Assembly (NCBI GenBank): GCA_950097015.1
Contig: CATNEN010000005.1
Coordinates: 1,426,001 to 1,490,000 of the forward strand
DNA from: Macrostomum hystrix
Lineage: Eukaryota > Animalia > Platyhelminthes
Direction of reading: 5' to 3'
Length of the DNA stretch: 64,000 nt
A program made the translations under genes and the position numbers. Shown one piece after another: positions 2,405 through 50,149 of the stretch; within the stretch, counting starts at the first letter, position 1; the number at the start of each line of letters is the position of its first letter. The notes below the pieces were generated by a model. It worked only from the letters and a program-made list of their open reading frames with translations, was not told the origin of the DNA and did no database searches.

Positions 2405-3077
2405 GAGTGAGAGGCGTGTAAAACGTAGATCCGCTAAAAGCCTAGCATTTCATTCGGTTAATTTTAAATTAATTTTTGCTGCAAGATTTCTGGCCGTCCT
2501 TTTGTACCGAACAGTTTTTAGTCAATCGTTTTTAAAGCCAGCATGATTATCTGATAGCGCCAAAGAGTCATTTTCGATCAGCATGAAATCTAAATCATAT
2601 TTTTATACGGTAAAATAGGATTCTAAAAAATAACAAATATAATTCTATGAAAAACCACTGAAAGGTCGTTTAATTTAGATTTCAGAAGAATAAGCATTGT
2701 GCTCACAAGTGAAACTCTAAATAATGGATCTATGCGAGCTGCTTTTGTTTTTCTCTGTTAATTTTATGATGAAGGTGAGAGTGCCACAGGAAAAAATCTG
2801 ATTATAAAAATAATAGGAAGATTTTCAAACGGAAGAAAACAATTTCGTAATACTAAAAAGGCAAAAATTATAGGAAATTAGCAAAATTTTGTTTATTTGA
2901 TTCCATTCACCATAATCAGTCAGGAAATTTAGGATATTAGGAAAAATATCCCAATCAATTTCAACCCTCGATACGCCAGGTGATATTGCGGTTAAATCAC
3001 ATAATTATTCTCAATTACGACTGTTTGATGTTAAATTGTTGCTAAAAATCGTGAAAGTTTATTGAATTTTTATAAGA

Positions 3078-3189
3078 ATTGCAGGAGGGCTCCAGGTGAT
3101 GGCGGGGGTGACACTAGACATGCAGCCAGCGAACTTAGGCTCAGTGACGCGAGAGTCAAACGCGCGTAACCGCTCTGCCACCGGCCCCC
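3078..3189 (-). mobile_element. tRNA-derived SINE of a second family; related copies at 37780-37918 (-) and 46520-46670 (+)
   Basis: The minus strand reads ggggccggTGGCAGAGCGGttacgcgcgtttgactctcgc...gctggctgcatgtctagtgtca...gccatcacctggagccctcctgcaatt. Head and tail match 46520-46670. Confidence 0.65.
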
Positions 3190-37463: not shown

Positions 37464-40085
37464 TCAGTTGTTGACGCGAGTGATCTTGTCCAGCACAATC
37501 GGATCAACGCGGAGCTTCCTCTTAGTTTCGTCGTCACGTTTTACTGAAACCATAGCAACGCAGCCTTTGTTAGATTTGCCAGTATAGCCTGGAGCTGAGA
37601 ATGCCGTGATGAGGTTTTTTTTGTAGTGCCATTCGTAGCCGGACATGCGCACATCGTGACCTGTTCGAAATTTGAGATAATTTGCGTCATCTTTAATATT
37701 TTCAGGAGGGCTGCGCGAAAATGGCACATCATGTGGCAGCCAGCGCAGACTACTGTACGCAGGCACACGCTTACACAGGTGTGTAAATCTGCTCTGACTT
37801 TCTCATCGTCAGGCAGTGTACACTCACTGTACCAAATTAATGTGGCCTCGCCGCGGAATCGAGCTCTGGGACCTTGGTGCGAGAGGCAAACGCGTAAGAC
37901 CGCTCTGCCACTCACCCCGAGATCATTTAAATAGAGCAGCATTAAAGGTGGAGAATTTGGTGTTCGTGAATAAAAAATATATCTGTTAAAGCTTTGAAAA
38001 ACTACTCTGAAGAAAAAGCTAAAAGTTCACTAACCTCGAACAATCATACTGAGCTGCCAAGAGTTCAGAAACTTCTCAATAACATTGGTGCCAAAGACGT
38101 AGGAAATCTTTCGATCATTGTTGAAATTCCAGCCTTTGCTCTGGTGCCACTTCTGATCATTTGGCCCGGTGGTGCCCTTCACGACGGACGGATCCGACCA
38201 CAGCAGATCCGACAACAGGAAGCCGTAAGTCTCGAAGGTCTTTGTGGTGATGATTTCCCGAAGAACTTCTGCTCCGATTGTAAGTAATGAAAATAATGTA
38301 CTTAGATCTCCCAATCGTATACCTATAATGCTATACTCATTAACTGATAGTTTTTCGCTCGTATGTGCGATTAACAATCTACTGCTCTAAAAGTTCATGG
38401 GATTTGATTAATCTGAAGCTCGAATATAAAAAGTTCTCAAAAGCGAATTCTCATCGTGGTAGCCTACGAAGTAATTTCTATGGTCTCACCCTTGTCCTTG
38501 ACGTAGGCGTCCCCGATTTCGCTAGGATTCTTGACCCGAGTATTGATTAGGTCAATCAGGTAGTCAACTGGCTGGCTAGACGACATGTGGTCGGGTATTT
38601 CGCAGATGTCAACTATGCGACTCTTGCCAGTGCCGGCACGACAGGTGTGACACATTGTGAGTATAGGCGAGATGCCGCCGTGGACGCAGAATATTTTTCT
38701 GTCCAGAACGCACACAGATGGCAGGTAGTCGAAGACGTGCACAAACATGTAGTACATGTTGTTGAATGACAGGTCGTACAAGGCGGCGTTATTGCCGACG
38801 TTCTCGGAGCACCTGTTATATGCGTTAGTTAATGCAGCGACTGCAATGAGTACCAACGGTACACTTGATGCAAATTTAAATTGGAAAATGGACACAAACA
38901 AACTCGTAATATAAGAGAATTAAATTTAAACAATTAATTAATTATCAATATCTGAGAGTGTACATCAACACCAACATACAACCGATGGTAGGTTGCCAGC
39001 TTAATAAAATATATTTCGAAAACCAATTTAGAGTCCTTACCTGTTGCGCACCTCATCCAAAAAACCATAGTGCTCGTGCATGTCGAAATCCTCGTGGTTG
39101 CCCTTCAGAAAGAACACCCTGCTTGGGTATCTCAGCTTGTAGTACAGCAGCAACAAAGTGGTCTCTATCTGGCGTGGTCCGCGATCCACCGAGTCGCCGC
39201 AGATCACATAACTGTACACATTTTGCTGCTCTGGTCCGCCGAATAGGAAGAGCCAGCGCAACTCGTCCGAGTGCTGGCCGTGTAAATCGGTGAACACGAA
39301 GGCTGGGCCTTCGCACTCCTCGCAGGCCATGTGCTGCACTAGGCAGTAGCGGACGGCCATAAGCAAGGCAATGATGCGGTAGCCGTTTAGCTTGTTGTCC
39401 TCCTTAGTGTCGTCATCCCATACGATTGTCAGACTGTGGTGATCATGTGTACAAGTGAGCGCATTAGGTATACATTTTGAAATTGTTTTTTGTGCCAAAA
39501 AAATTCAAACCTACCTCTATACATTTTTATGTTAACCTCGTCGATCTTAGTTATCCTATTTATCTTCGAGTCGATTTACACTGCATCTTAATCTCCCATA
39601 TTATTATTGCTATAATCTTTCCACAAGGGTTGAAATACTCACGGCCTGCCTTCGAAGCCGACATTTTCCGGCTTTGATTTTCCAGTCTTCAGAGCATTAT
39701 CTGTGGCTCTATTGAAGAACTGGTTATATTTCAGCTTCATAAACAGGATGTCCAAATCCAGATAGTTGTTCATCTCTCTGCGCAGGTTGGCAGCAGGCAG
39801 TAGTTCGTAAAATCTGGGCATAACGAGCGTGCCGTCGCCATTCTTTTGCATAGACGAACGACCCAAGCCTTTGAGGTGGAGTTTATTGAGTCACTTTTTT
39901 GGGTCAGAGTGATTAAACTGGTAGACACACCAATTAAAAACTAATTTTGGCTGCCTGACAATGATAGTGGCGTTAGATACCGATTCCTACCTACATTCGT
40001 CAATAAAACTGCAATTCATCTTACCTTCAGTTCCTCCGGCCTTCTTCTTGCCAGAAACTTTGCTGTTCTCAGAGCCTTCAGACAT
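37464..40085 (-). CDS. Divergent PPP-family (PP1-like) Ser/Thr phosphatase; 6 exons (40085-40025, 39868-39643, 39433-39041, 38812-38490, 38268-38035, 37660-37464), 477 aa
   Basis: Motifs TDLHGQ, GDSVDRG, KGNHE, VHGGISP, DLLWSDP, RGH and FSAPGY. All introns are GT-AG with phases 1,2,2,1,1, summing to 1434 nt. Confidence 0.88.
37780..37918 (-). mobile_element. tRNA-derived SINE copy in the last phosphatase intron
   Basis: Minus strand ggggtgagTGGCAGAGCGGtcttacgcgtttgcctctcgc...gagctcgattcc, the same head as the copies at 3189 and 46520. Confidence 0.6.
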
Positions 40086-43118: not shown

Positions 43119-43319
43119 TAGAATTCCAACTGAAGTGGCATTAGAAAAACAAAAGCTTTTTTATTGTTAATACGAGTAATACAGACAATAATTTATTGTT
43201 TATATATATATTTAGACAGTTATAATAGGAAGGAGATATGGATTTAAAGGGTAAAGGGTTGGGACTTATAGGTAAGAGGATAAAGAGTTAAGAAGGACGT
43301 TAGAGTCATAGTAAATGGG

Positions 43320-43790
43320 ATTGTAATTGGTAGGGAAAAGGATTGGGATATGCAGGAAACGGGATTAGGATTTGTAGGGAAGGGGATTGGGATTGGGATT
43401 CGTAGGGAAGGTGAATGGCATTTGAAGGGAAAGGGATTGGGATTTTAGAGAAGAGGATTTTTAGGGAAGGGGATTGGGACTCGTAGGCAGGGGAATAGGA
43501 TTGTGGTTTGTAGGGAAGGGGATTGGGGTTTGTAGGGAAGGGGATTGGGATTTTTAGGGATTAGGATTGGGATTCGTAGCGAAGGGGAATGGGATTGGGA
43601 TTTGTAGGGAAGGGGATTGGGGTTTGTAGGGAATGGGATTGGGATTCGTAGCGAAGGGGAATGGGATTGGGATTTGTAGGGAAGGGGATTGGGGTTTGTA
43701 GGGAATGGGATTGGGATTCGTAGGGAAGGGGAATGGGGTTTGTAGGGAAGGGATTGGGATTCGTAGGGATTGGGATTCGTAAGGATTCGA
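43320..43790. repeat. G-rich degenerate repeat built from gggatt/gggaat/gtaggga units
   Basis: Direct reading; lies upstream of the CSRNP start. Confidence 0.8.
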
Positions 43791-44387
43791 TATAAGGACA
43801 TTTATAAAATAATTAACAAAAGTGCAAAGTTCAAGCAAATACGAGTAAATTTGGTCAATATAAGTCAATCACCAATTTTTTTAACAATATATTTGGCAGC
43901 TTGAAACATAATTGGCAAAAAATCTATGACCTTATAATCTGTTAACCTTATAGAATATAGAGTACGCAAAACGCAAAATATTTCCAAGGTAGGGACATAA
44001 ACGAAAGATATTTTTTTAGCTAAACGCAAAATGTAAAACAAAATGGCAGACTAGAATGTAAAAAATAGGAAACATTTTTGCATATCACAGCCACCAAGAA
44101 TCAGTGTCTCATTTGTTTTTTTACTATTATTAAAAGTTAAAAGAATAGAAGCATCTTTATCTATTTATTTAGTTTAGGTTTCATAGAAAAGGTTGGACTT
44201 GTAAACAGTTGGAGGACAAAAACCGAACTTAAGTACAAATAAACAAATGGGTGCAATGGGTAAAGGCTTAAGACTGCAAATTAAAAATGCGGCAAATTTT
44301 TCATTTGAATTTTTTCTTTCACTTCAAGAGACAAAATTGCCAAACCGATCTCTTTTTATTCCTGAGAGCTGCATATTGCGCAATGGT

Positions 44388-45532
44388 GGACAGTGGGATT
44401 TTAATGTAGGACAGTGGGATTCAGATGTAGGACAGTCGGATTCAGATGTAGGACAATCGGATTTAGATGTAGGACAGTGGGATTCAGATGTAGGACAGTC
44501 GGATTCAGATGTAGGACAGTCGGATTCAGATGGTGGACAGTCGGATTCAGATGGTGGACAGTCGGATTTAGATGGAGGACAGTCGGATTCAGATGTAGGA
44601 CAGTCGGATTCAGATGTAGGACAGTCGGATTCAGATGTAGGACAGTCGGATTCAGATGTAGGACAGTCGGATTCAGATGGTGGACAGTCGGATTCAGATG
44701 GTGGACAGTCGGATTCAGATGGTGGACAGTCCGATTCAGATGGAGGACAGTCGGATTCAGATGTAGGACAGTCGGATTCAGATGGTGGACAGTCGGATTC
44801 AGATGGTGGACAGTCGGATTCAGATGGTGGACAGTCGGATTCAGATGGTGGACAGTCGGATTCAGATGGTGGACAGTCGGATTCAGATGGAGGACAGTCG
44901 GATTCAGATGGTGGACAGTCGGATTCAGATGGTGGACAGTCGGATTCAGATGGTGGACAGTCGGATTCAGATGTAGGACAGTCGGATTCAGATGGTGGAC
45001 AGTCGGATTTAGATGGAGGACAGTCGGATTCAGATGTAGGGCAGTCGGATTCAGATGGTGGACAGTCGGATTCAGATGTAGGACAGTGGGATTCAGATGT
45101 AGGACAGTCGGATTCAGATGGTGGACAGTCGGATTCAGATGGTGGACAGTCGGATTCAGATGGTGGACAGTCGGATTCAGATGTAGGACAGTGGGATTCA
45201 GATGTAGGACAGTCGGATTCAGATGGTGGACAGTCAGATTCAGATGGTGGACAGTCGGATTCAGATGGTGGACAGTCGGATTCAGATGTAGGACAGTGGG
45301 ATTCAGATGGTGGACAGTCGGATTCAGATGGTAGACAGTCGGATTCAGATGTAGGACAGTCGGATTCAGATGTAGGACCGTCGGATTCAGATGTAGGACA
45401 GTCGGATTCAGATTGTGGACAGTCGGATTCAGATGTAGGACAGTCGGATTCAGATTGTGGACAGTCGGATTCAGATGGTGGACAGTCGGATTCAGATTGT
45501 GGACAGTCGGATTCAGATGGTGGACAGTCGGA
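44388..45532. repeat. 21-bp minisatellite (ggacagtcggattcagat[gta/ggt])n, about 54 copies
   Basis: Direct reading. The unit is stop-free in several frames, which explains the GQSDSDG and PPSESDC ORFs. Confidence 0.95.
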
Positions 45533-45616
45533 ATTAATTAGGCAAGCAGGCAACACTTTGTGAACCAGACTAAGCGCGGAATAGGATAAACGCAATAATA
45601 TTCTCAATGAGTCCAG

Positions 45617-46150
45617 TCAATGCTTCACCTGAGAAGCCAGCCAATCCATGGCAGCAGATAGGCCTTCTCCGCTGATAGCGCAACATGCCTGAATGTGCCA
45701 GGCCCTGCATCTCAAGCATGTGAGATCCAAGCTTTTGCTAATCTCGGCGGCGCTTAACCTTCCAGCAATGTCCTGCTTATTGGCCAGTACTAGAAGCGAG
45801 GCTTTGCGCAACTGATCCGAAGCCAGCATGCTGTACAATTCAGATTTAATCAATTCTAATCTTTGCCTATCGGCTGAATCAATGACTAGGATGACAAAAT
45901 CCGTGCCCGAATAGTACGATTCCCATGTAGTTCGAACGGAGCTCTGGCCGCCTAGATCCCAGACAACGAATCTGAGATTTCGCCATTGCAATTCTTCCAC
46001 ATTGGAACCCAGTGTCGGGGCTGTGTGCACAGTTTCATCCAATACTAGCTGGTACAGTATAGTGGTTTTGCCAGCATTGTCTAGGCCAACTAATAGCAAT
46101 TTGTGCTGCTGGCTGCCAAATAAGCACCACAGCCTGGCTAGGACTAGACC
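45617..46150 (-). CDS. ARL5: ADP-ribosylation factor-like GTPase 5; coding body is a single exon starting at Gly2 after a splice acceptor
   Basis: GLVLARLWCLF..HKLLLVGLDNAGKTTILYQ, TAPTLGSNVEE, WDLGGQ, ELYSML..LRKASLLVLANKQD and WHIQACCAISGEGL match the ARL5 subfamily. The acceptor ctcttcag ends at 46151. Confidence 0.9.
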   Translation of the reverse strand, partial: GLVLARLWCLFGSQQHKLLLVGLDNAGKTTILYQLVLDETVHTAPTLGSNVEELQWRNLRFVVWDLGGQSSVRTTWESYYSGTDFVILVIDSADRQRLELIKSELYSMLASDQLRKASLLVLANKQDIAGRLSAAEISKSLDLTCLRCRAWHIQACCAISGEGLSAAMDWLASQVKH

Positions 46151-46519
46151 CTGAAGAGATTTTGTTGCAAACATTTTTAAATGGGTTCCCTAAAACACTG
46201 TTTCACTAAAAATGATAATTTAAACAAAAAACACAATTTCTTGAGGCGAAAGGTGATATACTCTGTTTAGAAATATGAATTGTTATTCAAGTATTTAGCC
46301 AAGGATTTGCTACTGTTGAAGTACACTCATTATGTGCTTTGTGGATGCTTTGTATGAGATGATGTATTTCATCAGATATTGCTACATCTGCTTTAACACA
46401 TGAACTAGCTATGAATTTACACCTCAGGCAGACAAATAAACTGACAAAAACAGACAGATAAGTTCAGTAATTGTTATATTTTTATTTAAAATATACTCTC
46501 CATTTGCAGCATTCAATAT

Positions 46520-46670
46520 GGGGGAGAGTGGCAGAGTGGTCTAATGCATTTGCCTCTAGCAACATGATCCCTAAGCATAATTCAGTGGCAAGGGGCAGCA
46601 TTGCCTCCTTGCTGGCTGCTGGTCTAGTGTCAATAAATGGTGTGCCATCACCTGCAGCCCTCCTGCAATT
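46520..46670 (+). mobile_element. tRNA-derived SINE copy, more decayed
   Basis: ggggagagtggcagagtggtctaatgcatttgcctctagc...gctggctgctggtctagtgtca...gccatcacctgcagccctcctgcaatt matches the reverse complement of 3078-3189. Confidence 0.65.
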
Positions 46671-47674
46671 ATTTTTGCATTTCTTTACTATTTTCATTGA
46701 TGATAAACATTTGGGTGCTATGAGCAATAACACAGCATATCTCACATAAAATTTCTAGCAAATGTGGACAATTAGTAAAATTTTAATTTCAATAGGGTCA
46801 AGAACTTATGTTTTTTGATTAGCATGAAAAAAGGCAGTGCTTATTCTAACAGTCAAATGTGAAAAATTAGGAAATTATACACATGGTTCTGTGCCAACAA
46901 TGTCTAGCTAATCTACATGGCAGCTTGCCTAAATAATAGCATTACTCTACACTACATGATATGCCACACCAAACAATAGCTCTATGATTTGTATAATGCC
47001 CATCACAGCTACATAACTGCATACATTGACTCTAAGATTTTTATGGAAGTCCTAAAATTTAGTTTAAGAATTGGTTTACAAAGTCAACAAACAATTGCAG
47101 AAATATCACTAAGATGTGTGCCAGGCTTTAAACCCTTTAATTATTTTTTCTGATCATTTCTTTCAGCTTTGCTTGTCTTGATTTATAATATGGCTTTGAT
47201 CATATCATTTACTTTTTGTCTTTGTTAGGAAGTCTTTGTCCTACATTATTTGCTTTTCATTTAACGCCTTAATTTTGAGGTCTTGAGAAAAAATGGTAAC
47301 AACCATTAAAAGTTACTAGTGTTCCACTGTAGCTATGGATATGGCTACAGGAAGTTACAGATATGAAGCGTTTGGACAATAGTTACTGATAGAGATATGT
47401 GTACAGAAACCCATATCTAGTTTCCCATATCTAGTTTCTGTATCTTGAGTTCTCAAATATAGTTTGCACTGAAGTGATTAAAACAAGCAGTATAGGCACA
47501 AAAGAGACAGCAAGAAAAAATTAAATTGAGAAAAAACACAAAACATCTACAAACACAAGCCCCTAAATACTTCAAAGCTACACATTTATAGGGATCAAAA
47601 AACAAAGGGACATATTTCTATCCTTAATTTACAAATTTAAATATTTCTTAATTTGCAACCATGTCAAAGCCACA

Positions 47675-47850
47675 AAACCAACCTCAACTCTATGGAAATA
47701 CTTTACTCAATGTGATGGTGACATACACATAGCAATGTGCTTATTGTGTGACAAAGTTAAGTAGGGGTACAATAAGTCTCACTTGTCAGAGGGCAGCATG
47801 TTGAAGCATCTTGCAGATAAGCAACCTGATGCTTACAAAGAAGGTCATGA
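47675..47850 (+). pseudogene. Decayed BED zinc finger, probably a hAT transposase relic
   Basis: STLWKYFTQCDGDIHIAMCLLCDKVK*...MLKHLADKQPDAY has the BED W-x-x-F, CxxC and L-x-x-HL pattern with an in-frame stop and loss of the last His. Confidence 0.6.
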
Positions 47851-50149
47851 GAAAGAACAACTGAAGGTGCAGAAAAGAGCCAACAAATAGGCAGCCTAGA
47901 ATTTGCCCCTTTGAAAAATCTATTTAAGAGTAACACATTTATATATGATACAAAGGCTGCAGGAAGTTACGGGACTTTTTTATGGATATTGATATGGATA
48001 GGCAATGGGAAAACTTTTTGATACAGACATGGATACAGATATGGGAAAGGCAGTGTTTATTCCCATGGTCCAGTGCCAATAATTTTCTGCTTATCCACAT
48101 GGTAGCTTGTATGAATATGTATACAAGTCTTTATATATGCCGTGCCATTAATTTCAATTTTATCCACATGAATCTGCTTTGTTGAACCCTTGAGCCAATA
48201 GATCAGCAAAGATGCCAGTGTGTTATGACAGTGTTCTACATTTTGACCTACACATTCATTAACTGACATTAATATCATCCTTTTCAATTATTGTAATAAC
48301 AACTTACTAAATATTTTGTCATTGTTACATGTTTTTATTTGAATTGTATTGACTTAAAAAGTAAGAAGTCTATCAAAGAAAATCATACGAGTCAACCAGC
48401 AGAATTCTAGTCAGCACTGAACTTTTCACACATTATACATCATTGTTATTCTTTTACACTATGCATTGATAGTGTGCACTATACACTATACACTGAAGCA
48501 AAAGCCTTATGCTCAGAGAAGAATAGGTACCTAGGGACTTGAAAGTAGAGAAAATCATAGCTACCTATCTAATGAAGAAAATGGTCCAGCAAAAGCACTG
48601 TTTAAACTTTCAAGAATTTAATGCCTAAGTCCAAAGGACACAAAATTGTAAAGATTTGCAGAGGAAAGTGAGGAACTAGTTGACATGCTTTTGTCGGGTT
48701 TCTGAAACCTTATTTTCATACAGTAACAAGTCAGTAGGCACTAGTATCATTTGCGCATTTGCATCATAGGCCTATCATATTTCAAGCGCATGTTCAATAC
48801 AAATGTCAGCACGATTTCTCATACAATTGTTAGCAATGTTACCTATTCATACAAGCTGCCATGTGGATAGGCCTAAGCATAAACTTATCGGCATGGATAA
48901 AATTGGATAAAATTGTCATTATTGGCACGGGACTGTAGGAATAAGCACTGCCTATGGGAAAAATTGGTTATGGCAGAACTCTAGAGGTTAAACAAGTATA
49001 GGGCCTATTATTATTACATGTTTTATTATGACATCTAAAATAGATTAAAAAAGCTGCCAATGCATTAAGATAGACCCTATAGGCCTAATTAAAGTTAAAA
49101 TTAAGTATATATGCACTAGGGCTAGGCTCATGGAGAATTTGGAACTAAGGACCTAGGCAAAAGAAGATTACAGGGCAGTTACAACTCACAAGTGCATAGT
49201 GGATAGCTGCTAGGCCCTAGTCCTGATTTCCATCAACTAGATAGGCCTAGGCCTAGTGCTATGCCATAGACTAGCCTACCTAATATATTCAAGGCAAATA
49301 GACTTTTACCTACAAACGTTTATACCTGTTAAACAAATACAGGCCTATGCAAGAATAGGCCTATGCAAAATTTAGATAATCATTCATTAAACATCTAAAA
49401 AAATTGGCAAAACAAACAAACAATGTATTTTATGGCAGTGACTATACATAAAAAGATTTAATCAAACAACTCTATGTTGCGTAAATTTATTAACATATCT
49501 AACCAAAATGATAAACTAATGTCATTCCAGAGATTCACGTGCAATGTGCGTCGTCTAATGCGAGCCTGCGACAGAGAAAATTCCTACTCAGAGAATTTCA
49601 TGAAAGTTTTGAATTAGTTTCTTTTCTAAGAAAGGTACATTACAGGAAACGAAGTATTTAGGCCCCTATGGTTTTCTTTTTGCAATAATTTCCGTTTCGA
49701 ACAAAAATTTCTTACTTCCAAGCTGTACTATCAACTATAAGAACCTTTTTTGCTAAAGCGTACTGTAAAAACTTAAAGGATTAATTAAAATAAGTGACTA
49801 AAAACAAAGTGCAGAGCTGAAAAGTTTGCCTGTCTTGATTTCAAATTAATTCGTGTTAATTTACTGGTAGAAATGTAAATAAATGAGTTATCAGCATACA
49901 ATATAAATCAAGTAAACACCATTTTTATCTCAGAAGCTTCAATTTTTAAGCTTCTCATAGAAAAACTATATATATATTAGTGTTGATGAGTCGACGCAGG
50001 CGATGAACTAACTGTACGCTACCTCTATGCATGCCAATGTATGAATTTTTAAGCTGCCAGCAGGGCTCCATCATACAAAAATGAGTTACTGGCTGACTGA
50101 CTGACTGACTATAGACAATAGACTAATACCTTGCATCTACAAGTCATAG

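Follow-up and report, generated by a model that had tools for sequence, protein, structure and literature searches.

The ARL5 gene and its conserved N-terminus

The window, by which the whole analysed stretch of 64,000 nucleotides is meant, carries on its minus strand an ARL5 coding sequence formed by a single exon at 45617-46150, which opens with GGT, the codon for Gly2 (46150-46148), and closes with the stop codon at 45619-45617. The exon encodes 177 residues, and the Met must come from elsewhere. Around the start of the gene the minus strand reads AAAAATG (46174-46172), then TTTGCAACAAAATCTCTTCAG, whose AG occupies 46152-46151, then GGT and CTAGTCCTAGCC. In codons this is ATG TTT GCA ACA AAA TCT CTT CAG followed by GGT CTA GTC CTA GCC AGG CTG TGG, and the frame is unbroken from ATG 46174 through GGT 46150 to the stop codon. 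The first-pass annotation had placed the ARL5 N-terminus at a splice acceptor with no Met codon before the Gly; its description and its coordinates proved exact, and the startless layout of an acceptor followed by a Gly codon is confirmed.

The encoded protein matches the Pfam Arf family (PF00025) with E = 2.7e-63, covering residues 18-182. Its closest solved structures are human ARL5B (1yzg; E = 2.8e-71) and ARL5A (1.6e-68), with ARF1 (5e-54) and ARL1 (6e-51) as weaker relatives, and its named database matches are ARL5A/B. Judged by sequence similarity, ARL5 is a nearer relative of this gene than are the remaining ARF/ARL members. The P-loop GLDNAGKT as well as the DLGGQ and NKQD motifs are all intact.

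The acceptor CTTCAG (46151-46156, minus strand) fits the [T/C]TNCAG motif published for trans-splice acceptors of M. lignano (PMC8629364), a motif expected by chance at about 1 in 512 per position. Upstream of it, in the outron, lies the in-frame genomic ATG at 46172-46174 on the same strand, with an A at -3, which is not conserved in M. lignano and would prepend MFATKSLQ to the glycine. An in-frame stop sits 5 codons before this ATG, which makes it the sole genomic in-frame start; the first-pass annotation had named it as the only such ATG nearby. The octapeptide has no counterpart in any homolog; the alignment to human ARL5 opens at Gly9 of the query, which corresponds to human Gly2. On the spliced ARL5 mRNA, taken as the published 35-nt leader plus the exon, the next in-frame AUG is found only at residue 109, past the P-loop and both switches, and five out-of-frame AUGs precede it. 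The leader AUG would therefore be the sole start giving a GTPase.

RNA contigs at the ARL5 locus

RNA contigs were compared with the window from three runs of one study and one organism (X2, X3 and X4) and from a fourth, X1, of another study and another organism. The kinds of these runs are unrecorded; X2-X4 were treated as RNA because their cover tracks the exon and because leader-joined contigs occur among them. X1 covers 45871-46067 only.

Each of X2, X3 and X4 holds a contig of the identical length of 673 nt, which matches the window at 45560-46151 with 0 differences, extends by 24 non-genomic letters past 46151 and, on the 3' side, by 57 letters past 45560. Its depth is about 10. If the leader's ATG and the acceptor AG have their last G in common, the genomic match would be expected to reach 46151. 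From the extent of the contig, a minimal ARL5 3' UTR can be drawn at 45503-45616 (minus strand), which reaches the first units of a tandem array.

This array is a 21-bp repeat in about 55 copies at 44383-45532, beginning 85 nt past the ARL5 stop, and the contig enters it by about 30 nt. Open reading frames of 427-438 residues occur in it on either strand and are unlikely to be genes. A further array, with 22-bp units, lies at 43317-43777.

Other parts of the neighbourhood also drew RNA contigs. Thin contigs at 46824-47535 and 49053-49252, with a depth of 2-4.5 and no differences, stand upstream of ARL5, where the sequence is otherwise silent, and represent either outron or pre-mRNA or traces of genomic DNA. 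At 47992-48600 a diverged repeat, presumably a family of transposable elements, is strongly expressed in X2-X4; its contigs reach a depth of 80-200 and show numerous differences as well as rearranged joints.

The spliced leader and an upstream acceptor

An upstream leader acceptor and its exon were mapped to 46426-46668 on the minus strand. The acceptor is TTGCAG, with its AG at 46664-46663, which likewise fits [T/C]TNCAG and precedes the ARL5 acceptor by 512 nt. Contigs of X2-X4 stop at 46663, and the loose end of the X2 contig, when reverse-complemented, reads GAAGACTCAATTTATTGCAT followed by the shared G. This end equals the last 21 nt, terminating in TTGCATG, of the 35-nt spliced leader of M. 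lignano, the sequence of which has been published (PMC8629364). It follows that the runs hold RNA, that the species trans-splices and that its leader ends in ATG. Lack of an AUG-terminated leader had been named in the first-pass annotation as a fact that would speak against leader donation; here the X2 contig itself carries the leader's terminal TTGCAT plus G. An origin of the leader from a nearby copy in cis was considered and rejected, as no leader copy occurs in the 64,000-nt window with up to 3 mismatches allowed.

For the exon behind 46663 two roles can be envisaged, an alternative 5' end or an upstream cistron; in the latter case it could be a short one preceding ARL5 in an operon. It probably belongs to an expressed repeat family, since the depth over 46624-46775 is 83-218 versus about 10 for ARL5. 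Weak copies of 46426-46668 occur at 37846-37918 and 3074-3130, and the segment contains only tiny open reading frames and an AATAAA near 46488. An identity of 46426-46663 with a known RNA was rejected, because neither a tRNA nor, at E up to 1, an Rfam family was matched.

Comparison with M. lignano and other ARL5 orthologs

The best database matches of the ARL5 protein are two M. lignano proteins, BOX15_Mlig003408g1 (P0001, 82% identity) and BOX15_Mlig002685g2 (P0003, 73%), with all others at or below 63%. The protein database searched contains none that is identical, and the window is accordingly assigned to a Macrostomum-like flatworm distinct from M. lignano. Both are annotated as 5'-partial and both begin with G. 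In the M. lignano genome the Gly codon directly follows TTTCAG at one locus (L001) and TTGCAG at two others (L002 and L003), all of which fit [T/C]TNCAG. Upstream of the Gly the frame is closed by stops at a distance of 7 and 8 codons, and the interval holds no ATG, so that no genomic start is possible at these loci. In the Mlig_3_7 annotation, 5' ends were set from leader-containing reads and open reading frames were then called on the cut transcripts (PMC5730564), which explains why the M. lignano proteins begin with the codon immediately following the acceptor. The acceptor-Gly arrangement, for which the first-pass annotation had suggested looking in related species, is thus present in both M. 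lignano paralogs.

The Macrostomum ARL5 genes are without introns, with 534 contiguous nucleotides, and the M. lignano paralogs share with the window a [T/C]TNCAG directly before the Gly and the lack of a genomic ATG at the Gly. Unlike the window, they have no accidental in-frame ATG in the outron, and their upstream sequences are unrelated to it. DNA similarity between the window and M. lignano extends from 3-5 nt before the Gly codon to near the stop. Since the motif stands before the Gly in the window and at the loci of both M. lignano paralogs, where the upstream sequence is otherwise unalignable, its position goes beyond chance.

Outside the genus, human ARL5A and ARL5B and the ARL5B of Fasciola, Heterobilharzia and Taenia belong to the same family, with about 55-62% identity and an N-terminal helix of the MG-hydrophobic type, but in them, unlike in the window, the Gly codon is immediately preceded by an encoded ATG. 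In the ARL5 genes of Fasciola hepatica, Heterobilharzia americana and Taenia crassiceps, this genomic ATG directly precedes GGC, and the genes have introns and span 3.3-9.5 kb. In the two flukes among them, ARL5 stands head to head with another Arf-family gene of 205 residues. Because the three orthologs of parasitic flatworms retain the genomic ATG, the loss of the start is placed, on sequence comparison, in the Macrostomum lineage.

A gene that lacks introns where its parasite orthologs have them, and that has no genomic start at its conserved N-terminus, could be a decaying, startless retrocopy from which no functional protein is made. Four lines of evidence oppose such an origin and leave it with hardly any credence. 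The reading frame and the GTPase motifs are intact, and ARL5 is expressed in three runs. Furthermore, third codon positions are far more diverged than the first and second when the window is compared with both M. lignano paralogs (41-50% identity at position 3 versus 80-86% at positions 1 and 2), a contrast that indicates purifying selection on the ARL5 protein. Finally, no relic of a leader was found upstream of the gene when the leader was aligned, end-anchored, with the 60 nt preceding each acceptor, and 618 acceptor-like [TC]TNCAG sites served as the null (median 4, 90th percentile 8). The same measurement led to rejection of a related proposal, that a retrogene arose from a leader-bearing mRNA whose TTGCATG became a TTGCAG acceptor, as the anchored scores of 4, 4 and 8 fall within the null.

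The comparison also bears on whether translation starts at ATG 46174, on an unspliced mRNA or on one spliced at 46663, so that MFATKSLQ would precede the glycine and preclude myristoylation. This codon is in frame and has an A at -3, a leader acceptor does exist at 46663, and X2 shows thin cover upstream of the ARL5 acceptor, in the piece 46246-46419 among the pieces listed. Even so, a start there is very unlikely. Over 46168-46319 the depth is 1.95 in X2 but 0 in X3 and 0 in X4, where no contig covers the interval; on a transcript spliced at 46663, 12 AUGs precede ATG 46174, including the leader's own, which opens an ORF of 5 codons; and the eight extra residues are unmatched in homologs, M. 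lignano having stops and no ATG at this place. A minor unspliced or differently spliced ARL5 mRNA may exist, as contig assemblies drop rare forms.

The first-pass annotation had gone further and viewed trans-splicing as a control over whether the protein can be myristoylated. Such a switch finds no footing in the absence of ATG 46174 from M. lignano, in the lack of X3 and X4 contigs over the stretch preceding the ARL5 acceptor, or in the many AUGs that a transcript begun at the upstream leader acceptor would present before that codon. Instead, the dependence of ARL5 on the leader looks constitutive, because ATG 46174 is an unconserved codon of the outron, because of the 12 AUGs that follow from splicing at 46663, and because M. 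lignano has no alternative start.

Nature of the 24 non-genomic letters at 46151

The 24 non-genomic letters joined at 46151 are most likely the spliced leader, as judged from the length of the contig and from the M. lignano annotation. The 673-nt contig ends 25 letters past the junction, and its two ends would be branch points of an assembly graph, produced by the tandem repeat on the 3' side and by the leader on the 5' side. Between 7,000 and 8,000 Macrostomum genes are trans-spliced (PMC10468722). In a graph of 31-mers, a leader-led transcript would accordingly be unique only while a word keeps about 5-6 exon letters (log4 of 7,500 being about 6.4), and therefore some 25 leader letters would remain, in agreement with the observed contig end.

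A different source for these letters would be a cis-spliced upstream exon that ends in ATG and gives Met1, situated beyond the examined 4.5 kb or in a repeat. The letters are known by number rather than by sequence, and parasitic flatworms often use one acceptor for both cis- and trans-splicing (PMC12582326), which lends this exon some plausibility. Nevertheless, no joint into 46150 from anywhere in 46151-50100 is found among those above the support threshold, and RNA depth over 49360-50100 is zero in all four runs; the latter interval includes the weak cis donor candidate at 49918-49922 that the first-pass annotation had given as an example, which is thereby left without RNA in any run. A unique 5' exon would moreover have extended the contig, so that the stop after 24 letters, seen in three runs, counts against it. 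The M. lignano paralogs, for their part, are annotated from the acceptor by a pipeline using leader-containing reads. Taken with these observations, the cis exon is given a low probability, and the spliced leader is preferred as the source of the letters.

A model for leader-donated initiation of ARL5

Based on these findings, a model is proposed in which ARL5 pre-mRNA would be trans-spliced at CTTCAG, with the junction at 46151/46150, to the leader of the genus, which ends in AUG. The mature mRNA would then read from the leader through AUG into GGU CUA GUC, the leader terminus TTGCATG being joined to GGTCTAGTC. The leader's AUG would serve as codon 1 of a predicted protein of 178 residues that starts with MGLVLARLW. 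Removal of the Met would leave an N-terminal GLVLAR open to N-myristoyltransferase, and the putatively myristoylated amphipathic helix would then anchor ARL5 at the trans-Golgi. We regard this explanation as a whole, namely that the leader AUG supplies Met1 of a gene that is leader-dependent, constitutively so, and that acquired this state in the Macrostomum lineage, as highly probable. Of the initial proposal that a spliced leader donates the AUG, three supports hold: the contigs leave the genome at 46151, the leader ends in ATG and the M. lignano genes are startless; the assignment of the 24 letters to the leader stays at the level of inference.

The myristoylation pattern (PROSITE PS00008) consists of G, any residue except charged or aromatic ones and Pro, two further residues of any kind, one of [STAGCN] and a residue other than P. 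By inspection, and given a Met directly before the Gly, this pattern is fitted by GLVLAR of the window and by GVALAK and GLIIAR of M. lignano; the counterpart in human ARL5B is GLIFAK. ARL5 is held on the trans-Golgi network by means of its myristoylated amphipathic helix (PMC6829661).

The AUG of the flatworm leader initiates translation in schistosomes, as reported by Cheng et al. 2006 according to later papers that cite this work (PMC12582326, PMC9851317). A requirement for the leader AUG has been reported for more than 40 cDNAs of Schistosoma mansoni (PMC9851317), and Wiberg et al. 2023 stated that the Macrostomum leader likely contains a start ATG (PMC10468722). ARL5 resembles the flatworm leader-AUG mRNAs in that the organism's leader terminates in AUG, the acceptor lies in frame before a conserved, startless N-terminus, and the correct protein would require the leader AUG. 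It differs from the schistosome cases in that the animal is a free-living macrostomorph, the gene is another one and the next codon is the Gly2 of predicted myristoylation, while the case made here is sequence-based. Both the mechanism and the leader of the genus are thus already known, and ARL5 is a further example rather than a new mechanism. Within the set of papers searched, no mention was found of a link between a leader AUG and a Gly needed for myristoylation; this link may have been unremarked so far, though it is a direct corollary of the known mechanism.

A wider reading can be entertained, in which AG followed by GGN and joined to the leader AUG is, in Macrostomum, a recurrent, selected way of making Met-Gly N-termini, lipid anchoring of a group of myristoylated proteins that includes ARL5 depends on trans-splicing, and the choice between 46151 and 46663 could tune the amount of anchorable ARL5. 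This reading is speculative and is considered unlikely.

Implications

In conclusion, ARL5 offers a clean, genus-conserved example of a flatworm gene that would be unable to make its protein without the leader AUG, and its borrowed Met adjoins a glycine that is probably destined for lipid modification. For the annotation of Macrostomum genomes, this means that models which ignore the leader AUG will render such genes as 5'-partial, which is what happened in M. lignano, or extend them falsely, as with MFATKSLQ. In M. lignano, a flatworm open to transgenesis, ARL5 would offer an easy gene with which to examine translation that depends on the leader.
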